Made by a program: the position numbers and the translations under genes. A stretch of 63,306 bases of DNA, the filler included, from Reticulomyxa filosa (Eukaryota; Protista; Foraminifera): the NCBI GenBank assembly GCA_000512085.1. It is 18 parts of 18 records of this genome, joined end to end, with 100 filler letters (N's around TTAATTAATTAA, not from the genome) between each part and the next. Parts side by side here need not be neighbours in the genome. Positions count along the whole stretch, not along the records: positions 51,072 to 60,853 come from ASPP01007834.1; 17 more parts are not named here. One strand, given 5' to 3'. Positions within the stretch are counted from its first letter, which is position 1; every line of letters starts with the position of its first letter. Below, piece by piece: positions 1,289 through 60,953 of the stretch. The notes beneath the pieces were generated by a model that did not search any database, had not been told where the DNA came from, and was given only the letters and a program-made list of their open reading frames with translations.

Positions 1289-2286
1289 TTAACTCAACAT
1301 TCGGATAAGTTCTGCTTCGTAGTCTTTCTTGGGGTCATGATAAGGATGATCTGGGTGAGATGAGTCGGTAGTCCACAATTGGAATATTTGTCCGCACAAA
1401 GGACAACGATGTTTCGGACCTTGTCGGATTGGAATCCATGCCAATTCATGCTCAACTTCACCGTGATATCCACCTGTATTATCACAACACACCAAATTGA
1501 AATCGAAAAAAAAAATGTTTTTTCAATTTTATGCGAGTCGATTTTATGTCACATTAAATAAGAAAAGTTTAAAATTACATCATTAACCTCTGCAGCCAAT
1601 TATTCTCCAACGACCACGAGATGGTATCAATACTGGGCTTTCTTCAGTTCCAAATGGTCCATACAAGGCAGCATCATCGTAATACGTTTGATGGGTATCT
1701 AAGCCTCCTCGACCACCTATCACACGATGATCCAACTCTGCTCGCAGTTTGCCACCAATGTAACCAAACTCTGATTCAATCACTCCCTGTTCCCATGCTT
1801 CAGCTGGTGTCAGATATTTTGGTTTTTCCAATGAGCGCCATTCATACATTTTTGTCGCAAATTTCAAATCGTACTGTTTGTTTATTTACCCGCCCCCCTT
1901 TACGAATTATTTTTTTTTCTTTTACGTATACCCTTTTTTTCTTTTATTTTCCATCTTCAAAAGAAATTAAGGATGTTTTCGAATTGTCTCTCAACTTGAA
2001 GGTCTTCCAAAGGTAGAATGGACCAATCAGGATCCCAGTGTTGGATTTCAAATTCAATGTCATCAATTATGTTTGCCCAGTGCCAGGCATCCCACCAGTC
2101 AGGATCTACATCTTCTGGTCGGCGAGTATCTGGGGGTTCTTGTGGTCCACTGAAGTGGCGCTGCTGGCAGATCACAGGAGGGGCACATACGCGAAGCAAG
2201 GAATTCGATACTACAGGAGAAATCAACTTTAAGGAGATTTTGCTCCTTAATGCTTTATTGGATAATGGCTGAAAGAATTTTGCCAT
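1289..2286 (-). CDS. COX5B: Cytochrome c oxidase subunit 5B (yeast Cox4-like), 3 exons, about 253 aa
   Basis: Exons 2286-1996, 1873-1588 and 1473-1289 join in frame across GT..AG introns (1874-1995, 1474-1587). Motifs GPFGTEESPVLIPS..RIIGCRG, HELAW and RCPLCGQIFQL give Zn ligands C/H/C/C. The N-terminus is basic, transit-peptide-like, ending QRHFS. Confidence 0.9.
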
Positions 2287-2399
2287 TTTTTTAAGTTTGA
2301 CCACTTTACAAAAAAAAAGAAAGTTCGGTTGACGTTTCTCGTTACATTTGTTTGTGAATATAATGGCAATTATCAAATTTTTAGTCTTTGTAAACTAAG

Positions 2400-4060
2400 A
2401 ACGTCGTTTTGGTAGTAAAGTTTTGAAATATTTGATACTAACAATTATGCTGTTCCTTAACATCAGCCAGTTGTGTGCAAAGACAGATAATCTAGAACCA
2501 ATAAAACGAGGCGTTTATTGTCTACGACAGCACAGAAGAACTAGTTTGTTAAGTTTCTTAAAAGTAAGAAAAAAGCGAGGGCAGCACAACCCAGCACATT
2601 TAGTTGATGTGCCGTGATTTAGATGTTTGTCCAAATAAATGGCAGTACTAGTGCTTTTTGATTTGTATAATGTGTGACGCAATAATTGTCATCCAGTCTG
2701 TTGTAAGCACAAGTATACATAACACTTGACGCAAAGAAAAACAAAGACATACCTATCTCCAATTGCCATGTAATCTTTATTGGCAAATATTACACTCATT
2801 TGATTTTCAATATGTATTGATTTTGGTATTCCAGATCGCCTCTTTTTTTTAACATTTATATTTTTGTTCCATGCTTCCAGTTGTTTGTTATCCTCCTCAT
2901 TTTCATGAGTGCGTTTGCTATTTGGCACAGAAGCCGACAAATTATCAGATTTGTGGATGTCTGTGAAAGAATCGTGATCGTGTTTGCTCGTAGTTTTCTT
3001 GTGAGCGGAGTAGTCGTATTGATGATTTTGAGGAGGTAGGCTTTGAGAATGCAAAATCTGTTGTGAAGGGGAAACAACAGTGGCAGACAATCTGCGCAAC
3101 TGCGCTTTCGTGCCATGAATATCGAACAGCCCAAACTCTTCATCCGTGAACTGTTCCTCGGCCGGAGTGGCATGTTTCATCTTTGGCTGAGGTATCAATG
3201 GGGTAACAGGAACATCATCTTCGGAATCTGTGTTCTGGTCTTCTTCTTCTTCCTCTTCCTCGCCCGTCTCCTCCATATGAGTTGTGTTGTTATCCTTCTC
3301 ATTGTCATGTTTGGGATCGACAATCCTATTCGGCAATGGCAGATGTCCACCGCCAGTCTTCTCTTTTCCACTTTTGGTAAATTCATCCGAGAATTCAGTA
3401 TCACTATTCACAAGATCTTGTGTGGACTGTAACAGCTGAGGTAAATGAGAGTTCATCTTTATATCAGCTTTCACTTCTTCTTCTTCTTTTTTCTTTTCTT
3501 TTTCTTTCTCTTTATTGTTTTTTTTGTCTTGTTCTTCTTCCTCTTCTTCTTGTTCTTCTTCTTCTTGTTCTTCTTCTTCTCTTTCTTCCTTGATCCTTTG
3601 CGTGCGAAGCTCACTACGAAACGACGTGGAGACGGACATGTCCGCAACATTTTGCGAAGCGATCGTCAAAGGGGAAGGCGAGGGCGACAGCGAAAACGAG
3701 GAGGAGGAGGGCGAGGGTGACTGAGGGGACGACAACGTGGCCTTGTTCATCGACATCACAGAGCGAAACATCTCGCGTTCTTTGTCCGACACGAGTTGGA
3801 ACAAGCTCACTGTCCGCTCGGGTTGGTGGCGCAAATAGTCGAAATGGATATGTGGGGGTTCAAACACTTGTCTCGACGCCAGGCCGTCATTGGGGTATTC
3901 CAACAAAAACGTCACAATTTGGCCGTCCTCAAATCGTTCATTTTGTGGCGCGTCATGCAGCGACGACACATGGAAGCCGAATGACTCTCCCGTCGTCGTT
4001 TGGATCAATATCAACAAGTTTTGGCGGTCATAACACTGAGAACAATTTTCACCCGTTGCT
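2400..4060 (-). CDS. TLDc-domain protein, 5' truncated, domain split by a long low-complexity insert
   Basis: CYDRQNLLILIQTTTGESFG (TLDc 'C....LIlIkt..g..FG'), then about 330 aa of acidic/Ser-rich sequence, then IFANKDYMAIGD, a GTATGT donor and a downstream exon TAIYLDKHLNHGTSTKC (about 2650-2595), matching TLDc 'al.lD..L..G.S..C'. The 3' end is approximate. Confidence 0.7.
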
Positions 4061-50971: not shown

Positions 50972-51098
50972 NNNNNNNNNNNNNNNNNNNNNNNNNNNNN
51001 NNNNNNNNNNNNNNNTTAATTAATTAANNNNNNNNNNNNNNNNNNNNNNNNNNNNNNNNNNNNNNNNNNNNTTTAAAAAAAAAAAAAAAATCCTAAAG

Positions 51099-51943
51099 GG
51101 AATGTTCTTGTCTTGGCACGACGGTCCATTGGAAAAAGTGAGGACTTTGAACTCGTTCAAGTAGTGAGCACTGGTCATTCATCCGCAATAACTGGGATAT
51201 GTACCTATGACCATGACACAATTGTAGTTTGTTCGAATGGTTCCAACAAATATGTGTTGGCATGTCAATTGAAATCGTTGGTTCACTCGCCAAAGGACCT
51301 GACTTTTTCGTCGTGTCTTCGTGCCAACGGCGATGACGACAGAGCCACTGGGGTACTGTCAACCAAATATGGGCTGTTCGTGGTCTCCAAAAAGCTGCAG
51401 TTATACCAGGTCAAAGTCATCTCAGATGACTACAAGAACGATATTATTTTGGACGTCGATCGTAAGTTTAACGTCAAAACTTCCTCAAAAAAAGACTCCA
51501 TTGCGTCCACCGATGTGTTGATGAATGGCGATTACATCATTTGCTCGAAATACAATGGTTAAGAATATATCCTTTGTAATTTTATTTATTTATTTCCCGC
51601 TTTAAACAATAAATGTATATCTAACTTCATATTATATACATATATATGCATATGTAATGATTTGATGGTTACGATATACACAGAAACTGATCAAACACCT
51701 TGTAATTATTTTCAAGTTTATTATTACGACACGGAAAAAAAGAAGTGGCAGTGCAAGGAGCATCAACCAATGGGTAACAGTGAAATCGCTCGTGCAGTGC
51801 TCATTCCTCCTTTGGACAACTCAACCAAGCCAGAATACGTTGCTATTTGCCATCAAAAGTACTTACTACAATCACAACGAAGCAAGCTCTCGGTTAAAAA
51901 ACCTCAACCGTGCAAAATGGCTTTACTGTCTCTCAAACTATGA
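51099..51943 (+). CDS. Beta-propeller (WD40-like) protein, last exons
   Basis: STGHSSAITGICTYD..IVVCS and a repeated short beta-strand pattern; intron at about 51558-51682. Confidence 0.45.
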
Positions 51944-52262
51944 CAATTCAAAAAAATGTCATTTGTAGTGTGATTAGTATTTTTTCGTTCAATTATGTGC
52001 TTTATTTTTATTTTTAATTTTGCTTTGTGTTTTTTTTTGTTTTGTTTAAGTTTGGGAGATATTGTTTTGTTGTGTGTTTCGTTTTTTTGTTGGATGTAAC
52101 GCATTTTTTTTTCTCTTAATGAGGTCAAAGCCTTTACATTGGAATAATGGTCGTAGTACGAAAAAATATATTAAATTCGTTTTACGCACTTTTTTTTTTT
52201 AAATAAAAAAAGTACGTTGGAATAACCCTTTTCAATTTTTTTGGTCTGGAAAAGCTACAATA

Positions 52263-54222
52263 ATGGCAGATCGTGAAGACTCTCCTGAAGCAGACGCTCA
52301 AATTTCCCCTAACGATGGAGAAGTGGATATGGTTGGCGACGAGGTTAACGAACGGATCAAAGTGGCAGTGAGAATACGTCCTTTAAACGCACGTGAAAAA
52401 CAGAAAGAAAGCAAGATAATTGTCAAAGTGGAAGGGAGTTTCTTATGGCTAACAGATCCAACAAAAGGCGTGGATAAAAAATTTGATTATGACTTTGTAT
52501 ATCAATCCTTTGACAGCAATAACTGTGCGACCAATGAAGACATTTTCAAAGTTGTGAACAGATGGAAAGGGAAGGGAAAAGAAAAGGTGGAGAGGGCATA
52601 GTAAGATGGAGAGAAAACTCAGTACAAGAAATAACAACAATAAAAAAATAATAAAAAAATTTGGACCTTTGATTCATCAATGAGGGTTGTTTTGGTTGTG
52701 TACAACAGGATTTGGGACACATGTTTGTAGACAATGCTTTCAGTGGATTCAATGTTATGTAGTCACGAGATAGGGACCATACATATATGCATATGTTTAT
52801 GTATATTTGTAGATTTATATTTATGCTTATATTGTATACTTGCATTCATGTATATGCATATATAACTATACACATATACATGCATATATATTTCTTCCCG
52901 ATTTTTGATAGAGTTTTTTCAAGTGGTCCACAGACACGATTATATGCAAGCGACAAACAATAACAACAAAAATGTATAGGCAAGTGTATTTGCATATGGC
53001 CAGACAGGCTCAGGCAAGACCTTTACAATGTTAGGACATCCAAAATCTCCGGGTTTAATCCCATATGGATGTGAGGAGATATTCAAAAGAATCGATCGTG
53101 ATTACAACGGCACGGATATTCAAGTACCTTTCTTTTGTGCATTGTAGTATTGCGATCATTATTAATGATTGCAACCATTCTGATTGCTTGTTGTTTGTTT
53201 ATGGAATTCCAGAGCAACACACAAAATACAAAATACAAAATACAAAATACAAAATATACAACCAAAAAAAAGATTGAAGTCGAAGCGTCGTACTTGGAAA
53301 TATACATGGACCGTATTTTTGACTTACTTGCCGCGCCGGATCCAAAAAAAAAAACAATCAAAAAAGGGTTTAGTATTTGTGAGTGTAAAAAAAAAGATTG
53401 CAGCCTTGATTTTTACAAACAAAATTTTTTTTTTTTTTAAAAAAAAGAACGGAGAGAAAAAAATTACCGATTCGCTTTCATCCCAAACGTGGTGCATTTG
53501 TTGAAGGTTTGACTATGCATGCAGTTGGAAGTTATGAAGATATACGCAAGTTGATGAATTTGGGAGTTGCTAATCGAACAGTCGCCGAAACACAAATGAA
53601 TAAAATTAGTTCGAGATCTCATTGTATTTTCACCTTGCATATTCAAATGTCACAAGTTTAATTCGCTCAACTTTTTTATTCTATCTATTTGTTTTTTTTT
53701 TTCTTCTCTTTGCCCTCTCCCCTCCCCCCCCCCTTTTGCAATTTATCAACAAACTTGGCAAAAATAATGACAATAGAAATCCTCTGGAGAAATAACACGC
53801 TCTAAAGTAAACCTGATTGATTTGGCGGGCTCAGAACGTGTGAATAAGACGGGTGTTGCTGCTGGTGGAGAAAGGTCCGACTTTTTGAGGATAACAAACC
53901 TCAATTCACACACGAGCCAAATCACAACAACAAAAAAAAAATAAATATAAATAAATGAAAAATAATAAAAAACTGGGAACAGAATGGAAGAGTTGAAGAA
54001 AATCAATTTGTCATTGAATGCATTGGGTGATGTTATATCTGCATTGGCAAGTCGAGCCAAATTTGTACCTTTCAACAACTCGACATTGACAACATTGCTT
54101 AGAGAGTCGTTGTCCGGCAATTCAAAGACCATGTATGTTGTGTTGTGTTGAATTTGTTTTTACGTTGGCAAAGCGGATACATGTACTATTCTTACAATAC
54201 TTTGTTGTTTACAACTACGATG

Positions 54223-54264
<42 letters not shown>

Positions 54265-57200
54265 CAAAAGAATGATGGCAGCGATATCTCCAGCAGAAGA
54301 CAACTTTGAAGAATCAATGTCCACACTACGTTATGCGTCACGTGTGAAGAAAATCAAAACACACGCCAGAAAGAATGCCGCAGAGAGCAAACAAAAAATT
54401 GAACGTGAACTGCGAGCAGAAATCGACCGATTGAAAAAAAAGCTGGAATTGCAACAAGGCAATCAAGGCCAAGTCGATCAAATCACATCGCAAGTCGAAG
54501 CGACCAGCGAATCACTGCGCCGAATTCAAATGGAACATACGCAAAAAATTGATGAGATGAACAAGGCATACGCGAGCATCAGCAAGACCCTGTTGAAGAT
54601 GGGCATCACTGTCGGAGAGTCCGAAGAAAAACAACGACGCGCACCAAAGCTAATCAATATCAGTAGCGATCCATCTCTAAGCGGGTCCATGGTCTTCTTC
54701 CTCGTCAAGTCCGTCATCTCCGTGGGCTGTTCTCCTCAAGGGGCGAATGCCGAACAAGAAAAAAACTGGAAGAGCGTGCTCAAAAAGAATTGCAGCGACA
54801 AATTGCAATTAACAAAGGTGAAAAAGTCGACGAAAAAGATAACTCAGCATCGGATAAAAGGCAAAAGAAGGACCCTTTTGTTGATGGGGTTCCTGATATT
54901 TTATTGTCAAGCAATGTTACTTTATCTTATATTTTTTTTTTTTTTTTTTGAAATAAGCAGAGAGGTAGAGCAAAAAGTACAATGTGACAATGCCAGGATC
55001 CTGGAGTGTTTCCAAAGCATGCCATTTTGTCCGTTCGACGAACCATCGTCGATATTCGACAAGTCGCTATTGATGAACGTGCAAAAGTGTGGAGTTTGCT
55101 GTTAAGTCAATGTTGAAAATAACTACACACTATTCTTTCATATTTTTTTTTTTTCTTTCTCTTTCATTCAATTGGATCCGATAATCAAACAAAAATAAAT
55201 AAGATTTGAGCAATGTGACAAAAATGCGGATGGATTTCTAAATCGTGACGAATTGAACGGCTGGCTAAAACAAATTGTTGCAACAGACAAAGGATATTCC
55301 GGAATAAGTGATTCGGATTATGCCCAATTTTGCAGACAATTACAATGCGATCCTAAAAATGGCCTAACTTTTAACAAGCTGAAAGACCACTACATACCAG
55401 ACATTGAATACGGTGGAATCGTTGTCCGAGGAATTGCCAAAGATTTGCTCACAAAGAAATTACCTGCTGATGTCAAAGAGTTTTTAGGAGAAGAAATACC
55501 AATCCAAAATGTCGGACTTGAAAAAAACGGAATTCGAATTAATACCTCCAGAAAAATCACTATGAAAGTTTAGAGTGTGTGCAAAAATTTTTGTCTTTGT
55601 GTAGGATAAGATATAAATGCAAATGCAACATATACACATATATGTATATGTATATGTATGTATACATTTATATTTGTCTACACATAATAACAAAGGAAAT
55701 AGCCGTATATCAAAAGTCAATTGTAGATATGTTCGAAGAGAGTGGGAAAGGTATGGAAGCATTGTTAATTGGTCCTCCAGATGACGACTCGGATAACTTC
55801 ATTGAAGAGTCGCACATAACGATTGAAGACGCAGATCCAAGCAATGAACGTATAATGATATTTGTGAACGGTGATCGAGTGCGATTTGAACCTGTTCATA
55901 TTAGCAACGGGGACAATGTGTTGTTTGGAAGTCGCCAATTGTTCCAATTGATTGTGCCAATGCAAGCAAGTGACGATATTGAAAAGAAAAAGCGCCGAAA
56001 GAAAGCCGAGTCGGATATGAAGGAACTTGTGGAGAAAGAGCAAGTGTTTTTGTTTAAGAAGCCAGTGGACTCATTGGTTGTGTTTGACAAACTGATGGAA
56101 ATACGATTGAAACAAAAGTGTTACAGCGTAGAAAACTTGGATGTGGAAAAGTTAAAGGCACAGATAATGATGAATCGCCAAGTGTTGGCTCAAAGCGGTG
56201 GCGAAGAAGATTGGGGACTTATGAAAATACACGATCAATTTATGCAAGACTATCGTACGCTATCTACGAAAACACAAACGGCAAATAGCATGTCCTTGGA
56301 ATTGGATCGTGGCCTATTGTTCAACGTCATAACCGCCAAATATTTTGATAGCCTGAAAGACGTCCAGTCGGAACGTATTTTGATTCTTCGCGAATGCCAT
56401 TACACTGAACCTGAATTGCAATTGGAAATGCTCCCTTATCAGTTCGAAGAATTGCTAACACTATTGGAAAGATATTACGAATTGGTCAAGCAAGACGGTG
56501 AAACCATTGCTACTGAGACAATGGATGAAGATCCATTTGTTCCGTCTGAAATTGATGCCTGCTATGGAGTAGCTCGATTGGCCATCACCGGTCGTAAGAT
56601 ACCTCAAGAGCCTATCAAGTTGCCATTAATTATGGCCGGAACCAATGATGAAATTGGATCTTTGCTCGTCGAAGTTGGATTCACTTTGTCCGACTCGTCC
56701 TCGAATAAATGCTATGATTTCCAGCAAATTGAAGACAAAAGTCAAAATGACTTTAGATGTCATCAAATGTACGCTGCAGCAACCAGTAAGGTATTGCCAT
56801 ATTTCTTTTGTCGCTGTTGGCTCAGATGTCATTCGATTCCGATGTGATGGTATGTTGTTTTTAAAATTTAAAATAAATAAATAACTCTACTAATGATTCT
56901 TCAAACTCTCTTTGTGGTTGAAATTAGCTCCAACTGATGGTCCAAAAGGAAAAGAATTTGATTTTGCAGAAGCATATGAAGTACGATCACTGAAAATGAG
57001 CAAGAACTTCCGTAATTTCATCGGCGCAGAAGGTATTCAATTTAAGGTATGGGCACCGGTGTTTGACAATCCTTATGATATGCCTCCGGTTATTGCTAGC
57101 AAATTCAATTCAAAAAATCTCACTATTCGCATACAAACTCCAGATGGTGAGCAATTGAAACTTAATTGTAAAACCGGAAATACTATTACTGCTTTGAAAC

Positions 57201-57895
57201 GAAAAATTGATTTTCAAACAAACATTCCAGAAGATGCTCAAACGTAATTTCATTTCTCTATTTTCTCTCTCTCTCTTGGTCGACTTTTCAATATGTAAAA
57301 TGAAAAAAATCACAGTTTAATTTACGATAAGACAACATTGGAGAATAATCGAACCTTATCAGACTATGGAGTTCCTGAAGATGCATTGTTGCTATTGTTG
57401 GTAGAAACCAAACGTCGCAAATCTGTAGATGCAGAATTTCATCCGCCATTTAAGACACAAAAAGGACTTCTGGAAGGTGTGAGTGAAGAAAAAATATTTG
57501 ATGAAATCGACGATGCAGAAGACAATGACCGAGAAACACTTCCAGAAAGAGTACAAAAAGCGCTGGAAAAAGAATTAACCAATCCTGATCTAAGTGCTGA
57601 AGATAGATCCAAATTGCGAAGGGCCAAAAATCGTAGTGTTCATATTGCATTGTTGGAACAAGACAGCCGCCGTGTGCTCCCGTTAACAATGGAGGGATAT
57701 CAAGAAGAAAACAAAAAGCTCAAAGATTCATTGCGAAAAGCACAAGAACAAATTCAAGCTTTGGAAAGTCAAGTGGTTGCACTTGAAGCAAAACTACAGA
57801 CTTCTGGAACAACAGCCAATAAAACAGACACAAAAAGTGATAAACCCAAGAGTGGCACAAAATTTTTCGGTGCATGGCGCAAAAACAAAGACTAG
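52263..57895 (+). CDS. Kinesin-3-like motor with FHA, inserted EF-hand and C-terminal ubiquitin-like domain (about 14 exons)
   Basis: [10 protein letters not shown]; [11 protein letters not shown] (52990); SYLEIY; [17 protein letters not shown]; LIDLAGSE; SLSGNSKT; AAISPA...[13 protein letters not shown]; kinesin-3 pre-[17 protein letters not shown]; FHA FVNG..GDNVLFG; EF loop [12 protein letters not shown]; Ubl [12 protein letters not shown]. Confidence 0.93.
54225..54262. repeat. (CAA)n microsatellite at an intron 3' end
   Basis: About 13 CAA units directly upstream of the AAAG acceptor of a kinesin exon. Confidence 0.9.
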
Positions 57896-58691
57896 CCTAA
57901 TCTTTTTTCATTTCTGTTTCGTTTTTTTCGTTGAAGGGCCGCTATCAAAAAGATTGATGTGTAAAAATGCCTTCCTGTGATAATATATATAATTTTTTTT
58001 TGCACAATCTTTGACTCTGAGCAGCCATTTGTGATATGTGTTAAATTGGAACTGGAAAACAATGTCTTTTTTCTACTTTGCATTCACTGCACAAATTAGA
58101 AATTACTTTTTTCTTTTTCCAAGTTTTCAATCACACTAAATTATGTGCGAAAAAATTTTAATCAAATAATAAAAAAAACAATTATATCAAAAAAATACAC
58201 GTTTTACTGATATTGTAGAAAAAAGATTGCAATAAACGAGCATTAGCGCAAATTTGTCGACTGACACGACTTGTTTGCGCATTCAAAAAAATATTTAAAC
58301 CCCCTTGTCATAATATGGCTCAAACTAAGTCAGTATGAGATTTTAAAAGATAAGGTGCCGTTTTATGTGTCAACTTTGCATTCTACTGTAGTTCAGAGCA
58401 AAAAGTATTTGTCATTTGTTGTACACAATGATCAATATTCGATATCTTTCTACTTTGTTTTTTTCCAGAATTGTTCAACTTCTCTTTTTCTTATTCTTTG
58501 TTTTGTCTTTGCAATATTGACATATTTGATAGATTTATGCTTTGTATGTAATGCTTATGTAAGTGATTTAAGTCTTGTCCAGTATCAACATATATATAAT
58601 ACACAAATCAAATTTATTATTTGTTCTTTTAACATTTATAGTTTTTTCTTAAATATTTTAAGTAATATTTATATATTATTTAAATTTACTA

Positions 58692-59538
58692 CAGTAGTTT
58701 GAAAAAAAAACTTAAACATATAATGCTACTTTATTAAGACCCTTTTTTTATTTTATTTGAATTTTGTGATTTGTATTGAGATTTAACATTACACCGTTAG
58801 GAAAGCGAAAGACTTGAAAGTACTATTAAGTATCGAAAGTGAAGTTATAGTTTTATTTGTTAATAACTAAGACTTGAAGTTGAATTGCTTATATACGATT
58901 ACAAAAAGATAAAATCGAAACTAACTGAAGAATGTAAAGCAAAGCTACTTAATTTTATTGATGAACAAAAAATTAGACTGTTGATTATTGGAAAAGGTTA
59001 TATTTTTGGAAGAAATAAAAGCTGACTTATATTGAAGTGATTAAATTCACTATATGTTGAAAAAAGAAAAATATCGTACTAGTGATAGATGTTTATAAAG
59101 GTTAACGTTTGGTGGTGTAGCATCATGTCATGTGAGGCTTTGGTGTTAAATGCTTTAATGTTCTTGTGAGATTGAATGATGAGTCAATAACACAATTTAT
59201 TAAAAATATTTTATAATGAAATAAATCAAAATAAAACTTTACAAATGTGATTAAATAAAAATAACACAACTATTAAAAGACATATGCAAAAGTTTAATTG
59301 AATGCCAAACAAATTCAAGCTATTATCGACACCAAAGGAAAGTTAACAAAGTAAACAATATTAAAAAAATTTTCAAATTGTAAGAGGAAAAATTGTTTAA
59401 CCTAGAATGACTTTATTTAAAAGTATGTATCATATTTAAAACACGTTTAAAAAATTATGTCTTAATGTTGTTTTTTCGTGTAGAAAATCAATATCTTCAT
59501 ACTGTGGCATTATATGTGTACTGTTTTTAAAATGACTG
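58692..59538 (+). mobile_element. Internally deleted Tc1/mariner element with TA target sites
   Basis: Begins TA|CAGTAG (58690) and ends GACTG|TA (59540), both with degenerate TIRs. Internal remnants FIDEQK (first D), VNVWWCS (cf. VMVWGC) and QAIIDTKGKLTK. A further well-preserved right TIR lies at 58350-58388. Confidence 0.7.
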
Positions 59539-60188
59539 TATTATTTGTATAATTTGTGTTTTTTATCTGAATATTATTGAAAAAAAAATATTTGATTAAC
59601 AAAATGAAATCAATTTATGAAATTCTTTAATATTTATAAATAATTTGTACTTTACTTAAACTTCTTATACAAATTTTTCATTTTTTTTCCTAAAGATAAA
59701 TTTTTTTTTTTTCATACATTGAGGACAAAAACATTTATTAATCGTAGAAACAATCTAGAATTGATTAGTTTAAACAATTTACATAACTACATACATAAAA
59801 ACTTTCTTTCTAAATATAATATCAATCTTTTGAAAATATTGCTACATTGGCCCCAAGTACATGAACGCAGAATAGTATATCAATTAATTTCAGGCAAAGT
59901 TGTGCTGAATAAATACATATCCCTCATTAAAAGATCCGGTACACCTTAATGCAAATTGTGCGTACACGAAACAGATTACAAAGTTTGGAGTTAAACACTT
60001 TCACTCCATCATCCTTGCGAGATTGATAAAAAAATTTCACTAAAACTTACTTTTTTTTCTCGTTCAAAAAAGGTAAGACAAGAGCGTACTTCATTGCTTC
60101 TTGTGCCAAGAATAAAAACGAACACCAGAAATAATTTCAATTGAAACAAAAAAATGCAAAAAAACAAAAGCAAAGATATACACAAAAT

Positions 60189-60807
60189 TCAATTGCTTTT
60201 GTCTTTTATCGGCTCCAAAGAAGAAGCAGAGACAATGTTTTGATTTGGGACATTGCGCAAACCCCAGAATAAGGAAAATACAATGAAGGCATTGAGCGGG
60301 AAGATGAAAAGGGACAAAAAATAGAGATTCCAATGATACATTAGACAAAGGGAGCCAACAAAAAGAAAGCAAGCAATTTCAAGCAAGGCAATGAAGAGTG
60401 GGACTAAAACAGGAGTGATCAATGTGAAAGTAACATTTAACCGCCACAATTTCGCCAAAATGATTGAGCCAATAAACAGCGCGATGAATAGATACAAAAA
60501 TATCCAACCAACAAATGTGAAATACAGATTAACCAACAATAAAGCATATACAGGCAAAATAAGATCTAGAGCATCGCTTACATCACTCATTTCGAATGGT
60601 AATGATCTTGACAAAAAAGACATCCAATTTGTGGAATTGTTTTGTTTCCTCTTGTAGCTTGAGATCTTTTGTAGCCTCATCTCCAACAGATTCATGTTCA
60701 ATCACATTTATCGTCAATACGGAAGAATTGATCTTTTTGATTATGAATTGTCGAGCAGGTATGAATATAATTGCGGTCCAAATTAAATAAATCGTAATAA
60801 CGCACAT
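60189..60807 (-). CDS. Polytopic membrane protein, last exon
   Basis: Five or more hydrophobic segments across overlapping ORFs 60583-60807 and 60189-60701; no family recognised. Confidence 0.5.
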
Positions 60808-60953
60808 ACGAAAAACAAAACAGAAACATACATAGATGACAATAATTGAAAAANNNNNNNNNNNNNNNNNNNNNNNNNNNNNNNNNNNNNNNNNNNNTTA
60901 ATTAATTAANNNNNNNNNNNNNNNNNNNNNNNNNNNNNNNNNNNNNNNNNNNN

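Follow-up and report, generated by a model that had tools for sequence, protein, structure and literature searches.

A probable KLP-6-type kinesin-3 of a Reticulomyxa-like foraminiferan with an EF-hand module inserted in its FHA domain and a ubiquitin-like tail

Kinesin-3 motors are held off by their FHA domain, which plugs the nucleotide pocket, and how this lock opens is an active question. In the Miro-Milton-kinesin-1 and KCBP-KIC systems, EF-hand proteins switch the kinesin off or free it from the microtubule as Ca2+ rises; there, the motors are of the kinesin-1 or kinesin-14 type, and the EF hands are carried by other proteins, which act as adaptors or regulators. The gene described here lies on the + strand at positions 52263-57895 of a 63,306-nucleotide stretch of DNA from Reticulomyxa filosa (GCA_000512085.1), hereafter the window, and carries a predicted EF-hand pair within the motor polypeptide itself. 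Taken as a whole, the region is best explained, and quite probably so, as one protein-coding gene of a Reticulomyxa-like foraminiferan, encoding a KLP-6-type kinesin-3 with two lineage-specific additions, in which the EF-hand pair would most likely be a Ca2+ sensor.

By structure, the nearest known system is KLP-6 of Caenorhabditis elegans, for which an autoinhibited full-length structure is available (PDB 7WRG, PMC9314371). KLP-6 is built in the order motor, neck coil, coiled coil 1 (CC1), FHA, CC2, MBS and MATH; its FHA domain docks on the motor, is clamped there by CC1c and CC2, and provides, in its D-loop, the Asp that chelates the Mg of Mg-ADP (PMC9314371). As judged from sequence, the kinesin of the window is colinear with KLP-6 over all of these parts, and its family also has a D-loop with the Asp. 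The two differ in the FHA domain, where a 12-residue hairpin of KLP-6 is replaced in the window family by an EF-hand pair and an alpha/beta insert, and at the C-terminus, as KLP-6 has neither a ubiquitin-like domain (Ubl) nor a coiled coil after MATH. Further differences are an extra charged loop, about 54 residues long, that separates FHA strands 3 and 4 in the window clade, and a loop 12 without the lysine-rich K-loop.

By function, the nearest system is KIF1A, whose cargo binding is controlled by Ca2+/calmodulin, with free calmodulin binding the tail in trans (PMC6077247). Both cases link a kinesin-3 to EF-hand chemistry, but the Ca2+ response was measured in KIF1A, whereas the EF-hand pair described here is known from sequence; moreover, the sensor of KIF1A acts in trans on the tail, while the EF-hand pair of the window family is within the motor polypeptide, inside the FHA domain. 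Both halves of the window-family FHA domain align colinearly with those of KIF1A, KIF1B and KIF13B (PDB 4EJQ, 2EH0, 3FM8), from which they differ by the large insert and by the absence of the Arg and Ser of classic phosphothreonine binding, the His being present (by eye).

The piece analysed, positions 51072-60853 of the window, is AT-rich eukaryotic DNA. A gene model of 13 exons with GT-AG introns was obtained by reading three frames and searching for frame-keeping GT-AG pairs; the exons were then searched one by one, with the uninterrupted open reading frames (ORFs) of four relatives (L004, L005, P0005 and P0009) serving as proxies for the spliced protein. The gene and its exons are as follows.

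Whole kinesin gene, 52263-57895, + strand: ATG at 52263, stop at 57893-57895, 13 exons, GT-AG introns.
Exon 1, 52263-52550, + strand: N-terminal extension and start of the motor; the donor is perhaps after 52553 instead; sub-threshold Pfam Kinesin match.
Exon 2, 52709-52753, + strand: its junction rebuilds the motif ahead of the P-loop.
Exon 3, 52980-53123, + strand: P-loop GQTGSGKT; Pfam Kinesin E 7.7e-15.
Exon 4, 53273-53367, + strand: placed by the frame-keeping GT-AG search.
Exon 5, 53448-53655, + strand: switch I SSRSH; Pfam Kinesin E 2e-18; the acceptor is perhaps at 53457 instead.
Exon 6, 53777-53874, + strand: switch II DLAGSE; borders in exact match with the intron-less relative L006.
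Exon 7, 53983-54132, + strand: loop 12 and helix 5; Pfam Kinesin E 1.7e-15; borders match L006.
Exon 8, 54271-54915, + strand: end of the motor, neck coil, CC1, FHA strands 1-3, charged loop and FHA strand 4; sub-threshold Pfam Kinesin match.
Exon 9, 54997-55100, + strand: FHA strand 5 with the conserved His (54997-55035), linker and first half of the EF entering helix.
Exon 10, 55204-55567, + strand: rest of EF hand 1, degenerate EF hand 2 and start of the alpha/beta sub-module; 364 nucleotides.
Exon 11, 55696-56849, + strand: end of the insert (55696-55812), FHA C-half (55813-55959), CC2, MBS and first part of the MATH-like sandwich.
Exon 12, 56928-57243, + strand: end of the MATH-like domain and N-half of the Ubl (57125-57243).
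Exon 13, 57316-57895, + strand: C-half of the Ubl (57316-57409), conserved basic motif, coiled coil and conserved C-terminus; colinear with P0005 and L003 to the stop.

The introns were 72-226 nucleotides long with a GC content of 0.20-0.35, compared to 0.36-0.46 in the exons. The encoded order is motor, neck, CC1, a split FHA domain, CC2, MBS, a MATH-like sandwich, an intron-split Ubl and a coiled-coil tail. A preliminary description made from the sequence alone had proposed a kinesin with an EF-hand module within its FHA domain and a ubiquitin-like tail, and every element that it listed was recovered at the place given there.

The N-half of the FHA domain was found in three segments (54644-54727, 54892-54915 and 54997-55035) and the C-half at 55813-55959, in agreement with the preliminary description of an FHA domain that begins normally (about 54995-55035), is interrupted and then resumes. 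Each half matched kinesin-3 FHA domains. The profile of the C-half (alignment A7), compared against the PDB, retrieved the FHA domains of KIF1B and KIF13B at 3.1e-5, followed by those of KLP-6 and KIF1A, and the profile of the N-half matched kinesin-3 FHA domains only, at E 0.13-0.39. The charged loop of about 54 residues (54728-54891) was absent from the preliminary description. Between FHA strands beta1 and beta2, the D-loop DPSLSG is encoded at 54668-54685 on the + strand, with its Asp at 54668-54670, and in the motif DPxLSG five of the six residues (D, P, L, S and G) were invariant across seven sequences (alignment A8). Because this loop is conserved across the kinesin family of the window, the autoinhibitory lock between motor and FHA domain is probably retained. 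Inspection by eye of the phosphothreonine site expected of FHA domains (PF00498) found the Arg after the strand 3 Gly and the Ser replaced, with the His kept. Classic phosphothreonine binding by this domain is therefore unlikely, as it is for several other kinesin-3 FHA domains.

During the alignment work, the N-terminal FHA strands (54644-54705) were repeatedly placed by MAFFT on the start of the C-half (55813-55870). In both regions a similar Asp-Pro-Ser motif stands ahead of a hydrophobic strand, an internal likeness that may or may not be meaningful. Alignments A1, A2 and A4, in which N-half fragments were placed on the C-half, were dropped, and A5 was used for folding.

The insert lies within the hairpin that joins FHA strands 5 and 6 and comprises about 182 residues (55036-55100, 55204-55567 and 55696-55812), so that the insertion itself stood while its earlier estimate of about 150 residues was too short by coordinates. 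It consists of an EF-hand pair, of which hand 1 is canonical and hand 2, in exon 10, is degenerate, as had been described earlier, followed by a small alpha/beta unit. The 12-residue EF loop was located exactly where the preliminary description had put it, at 55217-55252 on the + strand, and by eye it fits PROSITE PS00018 at every position. The entering helix of hand 1, which had been missed, starts in exon 9 and is split by intron 9 (donor after 55100, acceptor before 55204). A 12-residue loop with flanking helices, as in an EF hand, is indicated by the loop pattern together with the profile of the homologues. The loops of the window, of P0003 and of L004 were fully canonical, and Asp1, Asn9 and Glu12 were invariant in all five homologues. 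A profile of these five (A9) retrieved EF-hand proteins only from the PDB, with calerythrin as the best match (6.8e-6); the calmodulin-like EF pair of Entamoeba alpha-actinin followed at 1.3e-4, with 77 aligned positions that covered both hands.

An independent sequence from soil (P0003) was 65% identical over exactly exon 10 and diverged at both exon ends. Since this identity spans exactly the length of the exon, and since each FHA half matches only kinesin-3 FHA domains, the observed architecture is more than chance. Two lineages have the insert and are only 26-28% identical to each other within it; it is therefore old within the group. An AlphaFold model of L004, of poor quality, predicted the insert as four helices followed by a beta-alpha-beta-beta-alpha-beta unit. 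The only metagenome locus returned by a scan with the EF exon (L008) was an unrelated EF-hand gene and not a kinesin.

Behind the FHA domain, the tail profile (A10) had KLP-6 as its sole match in the PDB. A model of the tail of a relative (P0005:1-290; moderate, with a mean predicted local distance difference test, pLDDT, of 63) retrieved KLP-6 with Foldseek at E 4.4e-9 and the MBS of KIF13B with a probability of 1.0 (E 0.035), MATH domains being weaker. The Ubl lies at 57125-57243 and 57316-57409, divided by intron 12, and agrees with the ubiquitin-fold domain that had been announced near the C-terminus (about 57120-57400). On the window, the Pfam ubiquitin profile (PF00240) matched on the two sides of this intron, with 13.8 bits for its positions 1-39 and 12.7 bits for 41-71, and in uninterrupted relatives it scored above threshold (33.4 bits, 4e-8, in P0005 and 31.2 bits in L003), placing the domain in the ubiquitin family. 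A direct reading of the window found no terminal Gly-Gly, the domain continuing into the tail. On this sequence evidence, it is best regarded as an integral, non-conjugatable domain rather than a ubiquitin precursor. A transcript fragment of the acantharian Astrolonche serrata (P0014, EukProt) aligned to the MBS/MATH-like tail, and the tail family therefore reaches Radiolaria.

The motor was identified by Pfam Kinesin (PF00225) on single exons 3, 5 and 7 (E 1e-15 to 2e-18), with weaker, sub-threshold matches on exons 1 and 8. The P-loop and the switch motifs, including DLAGSE, were read directly and the catalytic motifs are intact, which places the protein in the kinesin superfamily; in a relative that is 93% identical (P0021), the same profile scored 203.6 bits. 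The ORF of L004, searched against the PDB with phmmer, had KLP-6 (7wrg) as its top match, with query residues 2-218 aligned to residues 283-499 of the chain and residues 433-477 to 512-555. L004 thus has about 214 residues at the position where KLP-6 has 12 (about 182 in the insert of the window). This alignment runs from the motor through both FHA halves, and so covers the N-terminal motor, neck coil, CC1 and FHA order of kinesin-3, while the CC2-MBS-MATH block behind the FHA domain was recognized in the tail model of the relative, to which exons 11-12 of the window align.

Relatives in which these parts are read without interruption support, by comparison of sequences, a single gene that encodes motor, interrupted FHA domain, EF module and ubiquitin-like tail in one polypeptide. 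The Logan contig L004 has an ORF at 1-1809, without a stop, that covers the end of the motor, neck, CC1, FHA N-half, EF module and FHA C-half; from 3049, in the same frame, it encodes the tail with a Pfam-significant ubiquitin domain through to the C-terminus (P0005), so that MBS, MATH-like domain, Ubl and C-terminus are one ORF. In R. filosa, the L005 ORF at 1-735 (P0020, RFI_28654) spans CC1, FHA N-half, charged loop, strand 5 and EF hand free of introns, and over exon 8 it shares 94% identity with the window. The best matches of the window gene are R. filosa proteins, with identities of up to 94%, which supports a host that is a foraminiferan or very closely related to one. L006 has no introns over exons 5-8 of the window, and when the two DNA sequences are aligned, the interruptions fall precisely on the borders of introns 5-7 of the window. 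L003 shares the gene order of the window and has an intron at the codon where the window has intron 9; EF module and FHA C-half are read together in its ORF P0009. The junctions of exon 9 are continuous in both L005 and L004, and R. filosa L001 is intron-less at the junction of exons 11 and 12. Exon 10 has 364 nucleotides, which is not a multiple of three, and its skipping alone would therefore break the frame. Another R. filosa copy, L002, has 679 nucleotides without the EF exon upstream of the FHA C-half exon; this is uninformative, as the intron may be longer.

In L004, about 1.3 kb of low-complexity sequence (1650-3040) lies between the parts coding for FHA and MBS, and an antisense "gene" of 454 residues had been called there. 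The stretch is probably a long intron and the antisense call spurious.

The kinesin family of the window is rare and is present in databases as unannotated fragments. An exhaustive HMMER search with exon 11 returned 15 matches among 1.84 billion representatives, all of them fragments of at most 479 residues, from R. filosa, from soil and marine metagenomes or metatranscriptomes, and from one acantharian transcriptome. Word searches likewise gave short fragments only, several of them located on retrievable contigs. In the library of papers searched, none mentions an EF hand within the FHA domain of a kinesin, or a kinesin that has a ubiquitin-like tail. Together these results indicate that the domain combination, which the preliminary description did not know from characterised kinesins, is not a common one. 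A feature search of the ESM Atlas gave low-score kinesin/FHA clusters (0.75-0.81), which are leads only.

The architecture is, as judged from sequence, real and conserved, and from it we infer the function of the EF module. In kinesin-3 the FHA domain docks on the motor and the D-loop plugs Mg-ADP, and since the loop is invariant here, the EF-hand pair is proposed as a built-in (cis) Ca2+ sensor, anchored at both ends in the hairpin of FHA strands 5 and 6. Binding of Ca2+ would change the shape of the pair, and this in turn would alter either the clamping of the motor by the FHA-CC2-MBS-MATH block or CC1-FHA dimerization. Through the altered packing, the motor would then pass from the locked to the active state or back. 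As for the Ubl and the conserved coil at the C-terminus, they might most simply form a handle for cargo or adaptors. Among the functions considered for the EF-hand pair, a cis-acting sensor of autoinhibition seems the most likely, and by analogy with the known kinesin-3 lock we hold it tentatively.

Several observations weigh against the reading of the locus as an intact, Ca2+-gated kinesin-3. The lysine-rich K-loop, which is typical of kinesin-3 and not universal, is absent, loop 12 in exon 7 being short and without a run of lysines (by eye). The motor sequence alone is as near to kinesin-2 as to kinesin-3, the top PDB matches of P0021 mixing kinesin-2 (OSM-3, KIF3B) and kinesin-3 (KIF13B, KIF14, KIF1A) in a phmmer ranking. 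In relatives, Pfam FHA matched the C-half only and below threshold (E 0.007-0.013). The AlphaFold model of the interrupted L004 FHA domain was too poor (mean pLDDT 55.6, with the N-half below 50) to bear a claim on the re-formed fold. For single sequences, the Pfam EF-hand profile (PF00036) scored 17.6-21.3 bits against a threshold of 25.4. The EF loop is deviant in two of the five homologues, with Gly6 replaced by Glu in P0020 and with Thr3 and Ser5 in P0009. The support for the splicing of the window gene is comparative, from relatives, and the window copy has two breaks of frame. Some R. filosa family members have probably decayed, as copies with frameshifts and a stop suggest. Finally, Ca2+ binding by the EF module and an effect of Ca2+ on motility are predictions from the sequence.

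With regard to the fold of the interrupted domain, Foldseek found nothing significant for the L004 model, with ferredoxin-like hints only, for the alpha/beta part of the insert. When the two FHA halves of L004 were co-folded as separate chains, the score was 0.58 compared to 0.01 for the best control, with at least 95% of contacts shared between runs and a partner pLDDT of at least 77. This is rated by the method itself as weak support. Of 78 solved complexes, 51 attained the co-fold mark, as did 2 of 108 mismatches; but those that attained it with scores of 0.60 or under were just 5 of the 78 solved complexes, together with all 4 mismatches that passed.

The main rival explanation retains the architecture and takes the EF module as a structural or partner-binding insert that is insensitive to Ca2+, in an otherwise ordinary autoinhibited kinesin-3 with a decorated FHA domain, regulated by adaptors as in animal kinesin-3s. 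The degenerate second hand and the departures of P0020 and P0009 at loop positions 3, 5 or 6 are consistent with it, as is the faster evolution of the EF exon (dN 0.31 with dS saturated, compared to a dN of 0.03-0.11 in the neighbouring exons); the Pfam scores also remain below threshold, exon 10 giving E 0.0026 with EF-hand_1. On the other hand, the loops of the window, P0003 and L004 fit the canonical pattern throughout, and Asp1, Asn9 and the bidentate Glu12 are kept in five of five sequences in spite of the low identity of the insert between its two lineages. We regard a Ca2+-insensitive insert as possible, at the level of a doubtful alternative.

A second explanation accepts the architecture in the family and takes the window copy as a recently decayed pseudogene, in which two genuine single-nucleotide indels truncate the protein inside the FHA domain. 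Both breaks had gone unnoted in the preliminary description. The first is a one-base shift in a run of seven A (54759-54765, + strand), where L005 and L006 read the homologous codons straight in one frame; the surrounding stretch, 54730-54880 including the charged loop, has a GC content of 0.41, like the exons and unlike the introns, and its protein is conserved in R. filosa. The second is a run of four A (56737-56740, + strand) with one base too many compared to the reading of P0005, P0004 and P0002. A short intron at the first break (e.g., 54729-54847) was rejected on the one-frame reading of L005 and L006 and the exon-like GC content, and an intron at the second was rejected as P0005, P0004 and P0002 read the homologous stretch in one frame.

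Decay finds a parallel in the several family copies of R. filosa that are frameshifted or contain stops (L001, L002, L005 and P0023). At the sites of window introns, L001, L002 and L005 are intron-free; they carry frameshifts and one TGA, and such intron-less copies may be retrocopies, pseudogenes or products of an error-prone assembly. Yet both breaks of the window gene fall within runs of A, where indel errors of assembly are typical, and apart from them the 13 exons are open, all splice sites and the catalytic motifs of the motor are intact, and the ratio of nonsynonymous to synonymous substitution rates (dN/dS) is 0.01-0.07 against relatives in the flanking exons (against L005, exon 8 gave 0.014 and exon 9 gave 0.069). 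Because of their place in homopolymers, the otherwise open exons, the intact splice sites and the low dN/dS, the breaks are most probably homopolymer errors of assembly. A decayed copy with genuine indels is accordingly improbable as an account of the locus, and decay of this copy, taken by itself, is hardly less so.

The least tenable explanation, a gene-model artefact in which the kinesin mRNA lacks the EF exon or the Ubl exons and these are part of another gene, separate or nested, draws on the comparative basis of splicing at the locus and on the weak exon-wise Pfam matches of EF hand and Ubl, but it is very improbable and already largely refuted by the uninterrupted ORFs that span FHA-EF-FHA (L004 and P0009), FHA-EF (L005) and MBS-MATH-like-Ubl (P0005), by the EF entering helix shared between exons 9 and 10, by the loss of frame if exon 10 is skipped alone, and by the ubiquitin profile halves on either side of intron 12. 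The preliminary description had itself named an unspliced EF exon and a separate ubiquitin-like gene as findings that would overturn it; on comparative grounds neither holds, as the EF exon is read within the kinesin ORF in L004, L005 and P0009, and the Ubl is part of a single ORF in P0005.

Other features of the analysed piece lie around the gene or in its introns. Two ORFs on the + strand (149 and 93 residues), within 51113-51943 of the window and separated by an AT-rich gap, resemble the last exons of a neighbouring gene, and had no match in Pfam. Near the end of the piece, a hydrophobic ORF of 170 residues on the - strand (60189-60701), possibly an exon of a membrane protein, also had no match in Pfam. 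A partly palindromic TATACATATATATGCATATGTA-like motif occurs in three introns, at 51633-51657 in the upstream gene, at 52844-52891 in intron 2 of the kinesin gene and at 55631-55655 in its intron 10, and could be a microsatellite-like intron element. Intron 7 contains a (CAA)n microsatellite (54211-54267), and intron 3 a (CAAAATA)n repeat (53215-53249).

To our knowledge, this would be the first case of a Ca2+-sensor fold placed in cis inside a regulatory domain of a kinesin. The insertion would be a worked example of one domain within another that an FHA fold tolerates, and it belongs to a rare kinesin family defined here from fragments that carried no annotation. With the EF-hand pair inside the very domain that forms the lock, the hypothesis of Ca2+ gating can be tested directly with a recombinant fragment. 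Foraminifera have very fast bidirectional microtubule transport in their reticulopodia, and we know of almost nothing on its molecular control. It is conceivable, if speculative, that Retaria (foraminifera and perhaps radiolarians) built a Ca2+ switch into the autoinhibitory lock of a kinesin-3. Ca2+ on the EF-hand pair would then release or tighten the D-loop plug, so that local Ca2+ transients in the reticulopodia could start or stop the motor without calmodulin or adaptors, while the ubiquitin-like tail would select the cargo.

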